A DNA stretch of 64,000 bases from Calcarisporiella thermophila CBS 279.70 (Eukaryota > Fungi > Calcarisporiellomycota), in the NCBI RefSeq assembly GCF_041956535.1, contig NW_027192207.1:591374-655373 (forward strand), given 5' to 3'. Positions 51,923 to 59,220 of the stretch are shown piece by piece. Both the position numbers and the translations under genes were made by a program. The notes beneath the pieces were generated by a model, which saw only the letters and a list, made by a program, of their open reading frames with translations, was not told the DNA's origin and searched no databases. The number at the start of each line of letters is the position of its first letter. The stretch's first letter is position 1.

Positions 51923-54059
51923 TTAAGAAGAGATGCTTTCCGAGTTTTTGTTAGGCGCAGTACTTTCGTCAATAACAGCCTTTTTCAGTGTCTTCTCAAG
52001 CTCATTGATTTCCCGAACCGTATCTTCAGGTTCTATTGTAACAGGGAGGGAGTGGGTTTCAAATTCGTCGTCTGAAATATCATTCTCAAATCCAGTCAGC
52101 AAGGGGTCATTTTCGTAAGTAGGAAAAAGATATCTAAATAAAAGTATGATTAGTAATGGATTTACATAATCTTATTTTTTAAAATTACTTTGAGTCTTTC
52201 CAGAATTCGTGATCGTGGGAAGGGATTTTAGTAAAACACTCATTTTCTTTCATGTGGTGCGAGAGTTTGGCCAGATCTTCTGTCACTGTTCCACATGAAT
52301 AGCATTTGCTAATAGATGTCTGGTGGCGGATATAGTTGATAAGAGTTATAGTCTTGTAAAAATCTAGTTCTAGACAATAAAAATTAATTAAACTGCTATT
52401 CAGGAAAAACCTTTTAACTCATACCCAAATCCCTTCTAACTTTTTTAAGATCAAATCCATGAATTTCACTCATATGTCGACATGCTTCCTCGGGAGATGG
52501 CAAAACTACTTCATCAAAAAGGCACATTGTAGGCTCAGGATCAAGTGCTTCATCCCAATCCTCCCATGAGCTAAAAAAAATTATAAAATAGTTGCCAATG
52601 AAGTAAGTAATAGCTCAAAACAAAAAAAAAAAATACATAATATTTGAAAACTCACTCGTCACGGCGCTCTTCATCGCTTTCATATCGATCGTTTTCAAAA
52701 TTCTCCCAATTTTTGCCCGGTTCCTGGAAAAAAAAAGTTGAGAAAATAATTTACTCGTAAAGCACTGCAATATATTACCAAGTAATTAATAACATAGAAT
52801 TGATCGTAGAGACGATTCTTGGCCGCAATTTTAAAATGCTTCTTCTTTCGCATGTGCTTACGCAAAACCGCTGGCGTGGTAAAAATTTTTTCGCAATACA
52901 AGCATTGGAGGCTTTTGGAAAAAAATAACAGATATATTGTTAGCAGAATTATTTTTGATGTTAATAAAAAAAAATGACGTCAGTTAATATCATTCATATT
53001 CATACTATATTATTACCTAGTAAGCTTCTTCTCTAGCAAATTCAAAAACTCATTAACGTTTACAAGATTATCTGGGAGGCCAATGTTGAAGTTGTGCTCA
53101 GCGAACATATGACGAAAAAGATTAGGTCTATAAAAATAACAGAAATGTAAAAAGAAAGTTTTTGTAAAGAGCCAAAAAAAAATACCTGTTATCACAAATG
53201 TTTTTGCAAAATAAGCATTTGCGAGGCAAATTGCTGTCGTCGTGTCGTTCTTTTTCTTGGATTTTAAGTATTTCATTCTATAAATAAAATTTTAAAAATA
53301 CTTAGAGATGTTGCATTTAGTAATACCGCTTATTATTCAATAACCAGTTTTTCACGTTGTAATTTTTCTCTGAGTTCCTTGTCCTCCGTGCTATTTTCTG
53401 GGTCTATCTGATAAAGTGTATCTAAAGGAGAATGTCAATAAACTTATAAAGCCCTATTCATAAAAAACGCAATTACCTCCATTTTCTTGCACGTATTTTG
53501 TGGCATATTTTTCAATTCCATTCGCTGTAATAATTTGTGCCCAATTATCCAAATATTTGTCTAGAGTGATGTACATATGGTGTAGATCTTTGAACACAAT
53601 AGAATGTTGCTCTTTAAGATGTTTTGTGAGACTAGTCGTGTCGGTAATAGGAGCTTCAATAGAACAATTGCTAAAAGTGCAATGGACAAGACAAATGGTG
53701 TGATAAGGTGGCATTGTATCTTTGGATGCATTTTCAAAATCAGAAGAAGCAGTGGACGAACAAGAAGAGCATGATGCTGATCTTCGATGCTGAATAGGAG
53801 AAATAGGCGCGGTAATTCCTGTAGCTATTTCTTCTTGAGTTTTCTTATGGAGTTCGCTGCTAATACTAAATTTGCCAATAGAGTGTTTTCCCGTCGGGCG
53901 TCCTCTATTGCTGCTGCCACTTTCAACATGCTCCCGTGTATTGGACTTATTCAGCTGGTTACGAAAACGCCCGCGGGATCCGAATCCTTTGCGTCCTCCA
54001 GCGTTAGCATGGGCACCTTGTCGTGAATTTGAAACGGTTTGCCACTGCCCATCTGCCAT
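51923..54059 (-). CDS. ZNF277: Zinc finger protein 277-like
   Basis: CLFC...HMFAEHNFNIGLPDNLV, LQCLYCEKIF....LRKHMRKKKH, YDQFYVINYLEPGKNW, FYKTITLINYIR, YLFPTYENDPLL. Confidence 0.88.
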
Positions 54060-54202
54060 TTTCACTTTAATTCCCTGAATTGGTTGAAATAATTACTGTT
54101 TACAATTTATATTTATACTGGCAAATTGGAAGTCACGCGTTTATCACCACAAACGGTGGCCAAATTAATCAGAAGAATATCAGAGAATATCAAATCCAAA
54201 AA

Positions 54203-57142
54203 ATGTCAAAATCACACAATTTTAGTTCATCGTGTGAAATGCTACGAAATATATCCGTGGAAGGTCCACCTCATAACACTGTCCAACCATTTCAGCTTAA
54301 GGTGCTCAAACTTTTACGATGTAAGTCGGGAAACTAACTGTATCTCGGGGGGCAAAAATTTCACACCAAAACAGATACAATTGACAGGGATGCCAAAATA
54401 ATCTTAGAGAAATCACTTGGAATAACGATGGATGAAAGAAATCTTTACGATGTTATTGTTTCTGATGGAATTATCAAGGTAAATTTATAGTTCTTTCCAG
54501 AATTTTAGTTGCATTAACTCACCTTTTGTTTTTAAAGGACAAAGTAATTCTTTCGCCTTTTCTGAATAGATTAATTCGACATGGAATCTTGCGGATTGGC
54601 TGCAATATCGAAGTAATTTAGAAGTATTTCTATTGCATCTATTTATTCAACTAACACTATGATTTAGGTGAATTCATATCAAATCTGTGAAAAACTCGGG
54701 CCAAAAAATGAAGATACCTTATTTATGATCGTCTCTCTTAGCGCAGACACTTCCACGTTCGATTTAACCTCTGAACTTCAGATTATAGTGGAGCTATCTA
54801 AGGTAATTTCAGAAAAGGGTCAGGTTAACCTAACACTGCGAATGAATATGCCATCTTCCACTATATCCCACTACTTAGATACCTTGGATATCTGATATAG
54901 CCGAGAAGCTAGAATATGTTCCACTCCTTGGAGAGCGGAGCTATCTTGATCTTTGGGACGAAAATGATTTTATACGAGAACCGAGATGGGAACAAAATAA
55001 CCTCTTAGTCCATACAGTAATATCATTCTATCCTATAATTTTAGTTCTATTCTTATTCTCATATATTATACTATTTTGTACCATAGTCATTTCAAATAAA
55101 CAAAGATCACCCGTGTATCCGCGAAATTCTTACAGAGAATTATAATCGTTCTGCATCGTCTTCGATTGCTGTACCAGCCATTGGTCGAGTGGTTACAAAA
55201 TCTTCCATTAAAAATTTTGGAAAACCAGAAGACAAGAACAATGCTTTCCCATTTCAGTTTTATATTGAAATCGCTGATTGCTCTGCAAATATTCGCGTCG
55301 TAATTTGGAATGAACTCGTTTTCAAGACTTTTGACTCCATACATGTTGGTGACGTTGTCTATATTGAGAATTATCGCATAAAACGAATATATGGAATAAC
55401 AAATGACATGGAGTTTTCTTTGAATTCGAAATCGCCAGCTGGGAGAATCCGTAAACTTAGAGGTAATTTTCCTTGCAGCTTGCTTATTTATTATCTTAAT
55501 TCACACTTTCAATCAAATTACCCTACTTTCACCATAATATAGAGAACAACTTTGAATATTGGCCTGATATTGATCAAATACACCGATTTCCGCTGACTCC
55601 AATCTTTCGACTTCGACTTTTGCCCCGCATTCTTTATGATACGACACCTGATGGGTTTGAATTTGATGTAATTGGTAGAGTCGTTTACGTAAGTGGAATC
55701 GAGAGAGAAGAAAATGATAATGGCGTAGGGTAGGTACAAATATTCGCTTGCATTACAAAATAAAAATAACTGTATTTTTACTACATACAGCCTTTCGGAG
55801 TATCGTTGGGTCAAACTATATGATACAACATGCGAAAGAGGTATTACCTTGAAATTGTATCGATGTAGTCAAGGCGCCATATTTAAAAAGTATTGCATTA
55901 TTTACATACCCTCCAAATTTATTATTTATGTTTCCGATATATTTAGAATACATCCCGATATTATTCTTATTTGCACACGAGTTAAACTTTGCAGCATTGC
56001 ACGAAACTCGAAATCACCTCGATATACCTTTGTAATTACGACTAGTCTCAGTCAGTTTACTTACATTGACGATTTAAATCAAAATGATCAATTGAAAGAA
56101 AGATTTTACGATCTGGATCCAGAGGTATAAACTGCATATATACTAAGCAACTTCAATTTACATTGCACTAAATATATACCCCAAAGGCTCGAGTTTTGAT
56201 ACCTCGACATGACGAAATTCCACTTAAAGACTTTTGTTGTAAGTACAATTGAATACTTTTGTAAATGCTTGAATTAACACCCAACTGATGATTAGACGGA
56301 GGATATTTCAATCTACCTATATCATTTCAAACATTCGAAGAGTTCGAGAGTTTTGATCATAAAGTTAAAATAACCCCTCTACGGTAAACAATTTTATTTC
56401 TGACTATTATTAATGCTGTCTATTGTAACCTGGTTTGTTGATTTAGAAATCTGAACCGTATAACAGATAAACTAAGTATTCAAGAAAGAACTCGAACCTT
56501 TGTTATTGGATCGTTGAAGCAGGTTGAGTTCAACGATATATTTTTAGCCATTATGAGTGAACACGACGACTTTTCGTCAGATATAATGACCCGTGAGAAT
56601 ATAACTTCTCCTGAAATGATTGGATTCTTGCCACGGCTCCCATTCCAACATTATTACGCCCCACTTACAGATTCAGACAAGAATTTAACAATCGAATTAA
56701 CAATACAAGAAGGAGAAAAAAATTTGAAAGTATTTGTCGAAGGAAACGCTGATGAACAGGCTGGAGCTCTAAATAGTCAGGTATTGTTGCTTTAATTCAA
56801 AATATATAATTTATATGATTTTCATGGCATTGCTATTAGGCCGATTTAGCATTTTGGAAGCTAAAAACTTTCATCGATTTCTTTGCCGATTATTTTAAAG
56901 TAACAGAGATTACTCAATATGAACTAGACGAGCTCCAATTTTATATAATCGAGGTTTGTATAAAAAAATTCTCTTCAACTCGCAAATCTAATGATATCTT
57001 AACTTTAAAATAGCGCCTGGCTAAATTGGAATCTCAAAGATTTGTTTTTTTTCTTGATTTATGGCGAGAGATAAATGGAGATGTACAGATATTTTTATCC
57101 AAGATTTTTAGCATGTCGCCGAGCGACCGAAGTGAAAATTGA
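54203..57142 (+). CDS. RADX: RADX-like RPA-related multi-OB-fold ssDNA-binding protein (~14 exons)
   Basis: YDVIVSDG..KDKVILSP.LN.L....LRIG; PL.G.RSYLDLW; RVVTKS.IKNFGKP....FPFQFYIEIADCSANIRVVIWN; FDVIGRVVYV..IER; YRWVKLYD; LYRCSQ; terminal FVFFLDLW....V.IFLSKIF; colinear with recalled human RADX motifs. Confidence 0.8.

Positions 57143-57181: not shown

Positions 57182-59220
<2,039 letters not shown>

Follow-up and report, generated by a model that had tools for sequence, protein, structure and literature searches.

A native RADX-like gene in the fungus Calcarisporiella thermophila and its bearing on the age of RADX

To our knowledge RADX (CXorf57), a DNA-binding brake on RAD51 at replication forks, has been studied only in vertebrates. 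One paper calls the protein mammalian, a review of 2025 names no counterpart in yeast, and a literature search, with several primary papers beyond its reach, returned no report or comparable survey of RADX outside animals. What, then, is a gene that reads like RADX doing in the genome of the early-branching fungus Calcarisporiella thermophila, and how much of the mechanism mapped in the human protein is such a gene likely to carry? An earlier note on this DNA had proposed that about 14 hand-spliced exons encode a RADX-like protein with its OB folds in the human order, that RADX-type fork control predates the animal-fungal split, and that the gene is expressed in S phase.

The gene lies in a window of 64,000 nt, the whole stretch of DNA that was analysed and to which positions refer unless another contig is named. 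It occupies 54203-57142 of the plus strand, with its start ATG at 54203 and a TGA stop ending at 57142, and its 14 exons (Table 1) join into a frame of 2127 nt, encoding 708 aa, with no internal stop in a three-frame reading. The 13 introns are all of the GT-AG type, 54-80 nt long and mostly AT-richer than the exons. The encoded protein is RefSeq XP_069249504.1, 'uncharacterized protein VTP21DRAFT_3500' of C. thermophila, in which all 14 exon peptides fall at their expected positions, and the hand-spliced gene thus matches the public protein exon by exon. Support for the splicing comes from the uninterrupted frame, from the public annotation and from introns at positions that recur in other fungi; searches were run per exon first, and the full-length analyses used XP_069249504.1. 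The fungal motifs that had been quoted were found in exons 6, 8 and 14, and the human RADX strings set beside them agree with the human chain of PDB 8u5y, the chain used for all comparisons with human RADX. The GC content is 40-54% over the first 24 kb of the window and drops to 30-36% across most of its final 18 kb.

Table 1 Exons of the C. thermophila RADX gene and the promoter box, in positions of the 64,000-nt window
Feature	Position	Strand	Content
MCB-type box ACGCGT	54135..54140		in 143-bp divergent promoter
Exon 1	54203..54320	+	aa 1-39, OB1 start
Exon 2	54375..54478	+	aa 40-74, OB1 (RPA70N-like); preceding intron position common to Hyaloraphidium
Exon 3	54538..54612	+	aa 75-99, OB1; preceding intron common to Paraglomus and Hyaloraphidium
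Exon 4	54668..54802	+	aa 100-144, OB1 end
Exon 5	54879..55016	+	aa 145-190, OB1-OB2 linker with RADX-family PL-x-G-x-R-x-YL-x-LW motif
Exon 6	55087..55462	+	aa 191-315, OB2, predicted ssDNA-binding domain; OB2 residues by site conservation F234, Q247, Y249, W264, Y286, K289, Y292, N303
Exon 7	55543..55729	+	aa 316-377, OB3 start
Exon 8	55791..55889	+	aa 378-410, OB3 YRW motif
Exon 9	55947..56124	+	aa 411-470, OB3 end; loop aa ~428-435 at human QVPK position
Exon 10	56187..56238	+	aa 471-487, OB3-OB4 linker
Exon 11	56296..56383	+	aa 488-516, GGY-F/Y motif ahead of OB4; flanking introns both common to Paraglomus
Exon 12	56447..56780	+	aa 517-628, OB4 strands 1 and 2 around ~40-50 aa low-pLDDT insertion
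Exon 13	56840..56953	+	aa 629-666, OB4 helices
Exon 14	57014..57142	+	aa 667-708 and stop, final two OB4 strands

RPA1, POT1, CTC1, MEIOB and BRCA2-type proteins all have OB folds, and a divergent one of these might merely resemble RADX, a reading towards which weak Pfam matches to Rep-A_N, tRNA_anti-codon and MEIOB_N lean. However, these matches score at or under their cut-offs, against 140.1 bits for Pfam RADX (PF17659; cut-off 33.4), which covers aa 33-545 of the full protein. Pfam scans of most single exons returned nothing, the matches coming from exon 6, which by itself exceeds the RADX cut-off (E 1.3e-13) and has 8u5y as its best match in the PDB (E 1.4e-10), and from exon 8 (RADX, E 0.02). 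With the whole protein, phmmer against the PDB gives human RADX as the best match at E 9e-32, with RPA70 at E 0.12. The AlphaFold model, made with an alignment of 99 relatives (pLDDT 84.5, pTM 0.87), finds 8u5y in Foldseek at E 5e-41 and TM 0.70, the next family being RPA70 at TM 0.27. In VIA the model matches 8u5y with Z 24.7 over 593 residues at an rmsd of 3.3 A and 22% identity (next best Z 13.2), superposing model residues 8-700 on residues 43-851 of the chain, that is, over all four OB folds; the Atlas result is consistent with the same assignment, and the C-terminal half of OB4 aligns with vertebrate OB4 in hhalign at 98% (E 1.5e-13). The fungal and human proteins agree in the order and packing of their four OB folds and have in common the PL..YL.LW linker, the OB3 YRW and GGY motifs, the OB2 ssDNA residues and the lack of a zinc ribbon.

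The individual candidates fare no better, since the structure searches set RADX apart from every other family and canonical RPA1, POT1 and BRCA2 sit at other loci of the genome. Identity with RPA1/RPA70 was rejected as the protein has no C-x2-4-C pair and no PF08646 match, the PF08646 gene of this genome being on C12; identity with POT1, CTC1 or the BRCA2 DNA-binding domain, as there is no such Pfam match and TM by query is 0.25 or less; and identity with MEIOB, as MEIOB_N reaches 18 bits against a cut-off of 27, with TM by query again 0.25 or less. RPA70/RPA1 (PF04057, PF01336, PF16900, PF08646) likewise begins with an RPA70N-like OB, continues with DNA-binding OBs in tandem and is likely the parent family of RADX, but the fungal protein differs from it in fold score and in having neither the Cys4 zinc ribbon nor the long C-terminal trimerisation helix, both absent from exon 14. 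In reverse searches of the C. thermophila genome the Pfam RADX model leads to this locus only, as does caecilian RADX. The earlier note had held that best reciprocal matches to RPA1, POT1 or CTC1 would count against RADX; RADX was returned both ways, and given the profile, structural and reciprocal results and the separate RPA1 and POT1 loci the call stands. We regard a look-alike from another OB-fold family as scarcely credible, and we are almost certain that C. thermophila has here its one RADX orthologue, acquired by vertical inheritance.

Could the gene nevertheless be contamination, a horizontal transfer from an animal, or dead? The family is patchy among fungi, being found in three named species, which would suit an import. 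Yet the gene sits on a 695-kb contig among ordinary fungal neighbours, its introns are of 54-80 nt and its frame is intact through 13 junctions. Its closest relative is the uncharacterised Paraglomus occultum protein CAG8584439.1 (753 aa against 708), 31% identical over 91% of the length and its sister in all trees. When intron positions were compared by mapping public proteins onto their genes, six of the 12 Paraglomus introns fell in the same column and phase, with five more nearby in the same phase, and three of the five in Hyaloraphidium coincided exactly, whereas no position was shared with Saccoglossus, the sole animal gene mapped (0 of 16), or Galdieria (0 of 2). The tree, drawn from named rows or rows near them, without an outgroup and without inference of a root, places the gene as sister to Paraglomus at 98/97 and the animals as a separate group at 100/99; forcing the C. 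thermophila protein among animals is rejected (AU p=0.003), and the three fungi lie together on the same side of a branch that lacks support (77/52). The shared fungal introns and the tree argue that the gene came down the fungal lineage rather than from an animal, and contamination, transfer or decay is accordingly most improbable.

How old, then, is the family? Besides C. thermophila, two named fungi exceed the Pfam RADX cut-off, Paraglomus occultum and, marginally at 35 bits, Hyaloraphidium curvatum. Outside fungi and animals, named members occur in a choanoflagellate, an apusozoan, a malawimonad, an amoeba and a red alga (Salpingoeca urceolata, Thecamonas trahens, Gefionella okellyi, Pyxidicula operculata and Galdieria partita), and some 50 further metagenomic RADX proteins fall outside the animal group. 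Judged from those named members that lie outside opisthokonts, the family is older than the animal-fungal split; the earlier proposal on this point was sound but understated the age. The Galdieria partita gene (L022:4001-6349) lies on a 135-kb contig and contains two short introns, and the set includes a close relative. It is the only named member beyond Amorphea, apusozoans and malawimonads, and is placed, without firm support, next to holozoans at 78/92 among the weakly supported deep branches of an unrooted tree, so that either ancient presence or transfer could account for it; from this one lineage, RADX may be as old as the root of the eukaryotes. A separate observation concerns a locus (L016:1632-3362, Logan SRR10063242) with an intron-less RADX of 576 aa, apparently without OB1, which groups weakly near the fungal pair; its contig is eukaryotic and compact, with COX17, PEMT and Dicer as neighbours.

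The three named fungi are those among the 150 matches listed of 221, which suggests, as an impression from the listed matches, wide loss of RADX in fungi. A protein homologue search with XP_069249504.1 or with the 99-row alignment returned only the protein itself and Paraglomus, but the same search missed vertebrate RADX present in its query alignment, and another query (P0006) found itself only, so its blank says nothing about the rarity of fungal RADX. DUF5088 (PF17008), a 184-position family of unknown function, also passes its cut-off on the C. thermophila protein (E 7e-10), at aa 223-409 (55183-55887), which takes in OB2 and part of OB3, and it matches many other RADX proteins more weakly. 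DUF5088, presumably built on microsporidian proteins, may be a reduced RADX family.

The co-occurrence with BRCA2 and RAD51 that had been proposed as a check is found in this genome. RAD51, at C22:116493-117931, is the only strong locus of the RAD51/DMC1 class that was found and has RAD51-type motifs; there are two RAD51-paralogue-like loci; and BRCA2, at C26:~329000-332860 (L025), combines an OB1 domain with three repeats of the BRC-like form F-x-T-A-S-G. The genome also encodes RAD52 and a HIRAN-domain protein, RPA1 on C12 has its zinc ribbon, and POT1 has its own locus. In this intron-rich genome no separate DMC1 or MEIOB (MEIOB_N profile) was detected, and the HARP and ATP-cone profiles gave no match.

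The ACGCGT box that had been taken as a sign of S-phase expression is present, separated from the RADX ATG by 62 nt (63 in the earlier figure). It is also 75 nt before the ATG (54059) of the upstream neighbour, a C2H2 zinc-finger gene at 52600-54059 on the minus strand, which we take to be ZNF277-like and whose start is 143 bp away from that of RADX. At a genome density of one ACGCGT per 7.5 kb, a 143-bp promoter would contain one about 2% of the time. Among four control promoters, WCGCGW occurs within 150 nt of the ATG in RPA1 (C12:824917; L023), PCNA (C27:82870; L034) and BRCA2 (C26:332860; L025), and no MCB-type box was found before the ATG of RAD51 (C22); three of four corresponds to p ~0.004 at the background of the window. 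The genome has two KilA-N genes of the Mbp1/Swi4 (SBF/MBF) type, and an E2F_TDP profile search of this intron-rich genome gave no match. The upstream region of the Paraglomus gene differs, with no ACGCGT within 500 nt. A G1/S element is thus credible from the DNA motif, and S-phase expression is plausible in the light of the RPA1, PCNA and BRCA2 boxes; its target is uncertain because the promoter is common to the head-to-head zinc-finger gene. Downstream, a RIO kinase gene (57182-59100, minus strand) ends 39 bp from the RADX stop, a packing so tight that the two 3' UTRs probably overlap. A ubiquitin-conjugating enzyme gene is also among the neighbours. Neither of these two neighbours recurs at the other RADX loci viewed, and no functional cluster is indicated.

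What of the human mechanism has the fungal protein kept? The DNA contacts of human OB2 are defined in PMC10962997, and of the ten that can be aligned six are identical (Q262, W279, Y301, K304, Y307 and N331) and four are conservatively replaced (R248/K, Y250/F, F264/Y, R333/K); W264 in fungal numbering is invariant across 99 sequences. By alignment, then, the aromatic and basic ssDNA surface of OB2 is conserved, while the human OB3 contact R396 is not. The human oligomer contacts compared were R58, Y138 and E140-R142 in OB1 together with E526, L529, Q553, N759 and E761: an EK pair and an L-x-x-x-E motif are present and the N759/E761 strand aligns as D/N, both in an uncertain register, so that the OB1 Y138-R142 and OB4 N759/E761 contacts are loosely matched.

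The picture is different for the two stretches of human RADX to which RAD51 regulation has been mapped, in a protein of 708 aa against 855. The first, the RAD51-binding loop of OB3, is Q451-K454 (QVPK) in human RADX; the fungal loop is of human length and has KSPR opposite QVPK in a pairwise alignment. QVPK is, however, absent from every RADX protein fetched, vertebrates included, and therefore cannot define the family, and the loop is hypervariable across the family, with a length that varies even among fishes and amphibians; KSPR as a sign of RAD51 binding was set aside for this reason. The second is the 3,4-interdomain block (678-750), mutation of which removes the stimulation of RAD51 ATP hydrolysis (bioRxiv 10.1101/2023.06.19.545603). 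This block is conserved from Saccoglossus to tetrapods, and a profile built from the animal block scores positively on none of the named non-animal RADX proteins; some fish also score weakly. The fungal protein is without most of it, the S705/E713 part not being detected, and without the human 111-aa disordered OB4 loop, the insertion in OB4 spanning ~40-50 aa where a caecilian has ~250 aa. Near aa 573-579 a short [NG]-x-L-x-P motif may be what is left of the block's tail. Neither region is recognisably conserved as far as alignment can tell, which lowers the claim of a full human mechanism and leaves RADX family membership untouched.

Three readings of function can be set against these data. 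The one we prefer, at roughly even odds of being right, is ssDNA-coupled oligomerisation with restraint of the RAD51 filament, most likely by capping or occupancy, as in the capping model for human RADX (PMC10962997). The protein would be expressed at G1/S, would bind ssDNA of forks or gaps through OB2, would oligomerise through OB1-OB4 contacts as in human RADX, and would limit the growth of RAD51 filaments mainly by occupying or capping ssDNA, in opposition to BRCA2. The animal step of RAD51 ATPase stimulation is probably absent or done differently, given that the block and the long OB4 loop are undetected in any named non-animal member.

It is also possible, at perhaps half that weight, that RAD51 antagonism is an animal invention and that the fungal orthologue has a RAD51-independent job as an oligomeric protector or compactor of ssDNA, in gaps or at telomeres, where its main competitor would be RPA. 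This would agree with the unrecognisable RAD51-regulating regions, with the lack of a detected MEIOB or HARP domain, and with the action of human RADX at telomeres and its condensation of ssDNA, as described in bioRxiv 10.1101/2020.05.15.098996. Against it, an oligomer held tightly on fork ssDNA would block RAD51 extension without any specific contact, the genome retains RAD51 and a BRC-repeat BRCA2, and absence of a QVPK loop that varies even in fish and amphibian RADX is weak evidence. Somewhat less likely still is the full animal-type mechanism, in which diverged surfaces would both contact RAD51 directly through the OB3 loop and stimulate its ATP hydrolysis. The loop of human length with KSPR, the possible remnant of the block tail and the whole-fold TM of 0.70 speak for it, but in so variable a loop KSPR may match by chance, S705/E713 is undetected and the insertion is short. 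The proposal of RADX-type fork control in fungi thus holds for the gene and its age, whereas RAD51 antagonism is only inferred, neither of the mapped RAD51 regions being recognisably conserved.

The claim of novelty likewise stands in part: no published RADX outside animals was found, but Pfam PF17659 is already precomputed on the C. thermophila and Paraglomus proteins, and novelty is lower than had been held. According to PMC8021618 and PMC10684384, DNA-PKcs and fungal BRCA2 had been taken for vertebrate-specific genes, owing to their absence from model yeasts, until they turned up across fungi and protists; they are precedents for such an extension of range, and with the Pfam tag this known pattern, of early fungi keeping 'vertebrate' repair genes, tempers the surprise. 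More broadly, and tentatively, RADX could be an ancient eukaryotic ssDNA-binding family that was present before the Amorphea/malawimonad radiation, perhaps already in LECA, and was repeatedly lost, model yeasts included; its ancestral form would be a compact four-OB oligomer capping RAD51 filaments, to which animals added the OB4 loop and the ATPase-stimulating block, and DUF5088 may be what remains of the family in reduced form.

The fungal orthologue, native and ~22% identical, shares its genome with RAD51 and a BRC-repeat BRCA2, and it moves RADX back before animals. It also offers a natural case of separation of function, the DNA surface being kept while the ATPase-stimulating block and the disordered loop are missing, and its compactness may ease structural work. 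Having the DNA surface without the block, fungal RADX bears on a question left open in PMC10962997, namely whether RADX acts by capping alone or by capping together with ATPase stimulation.
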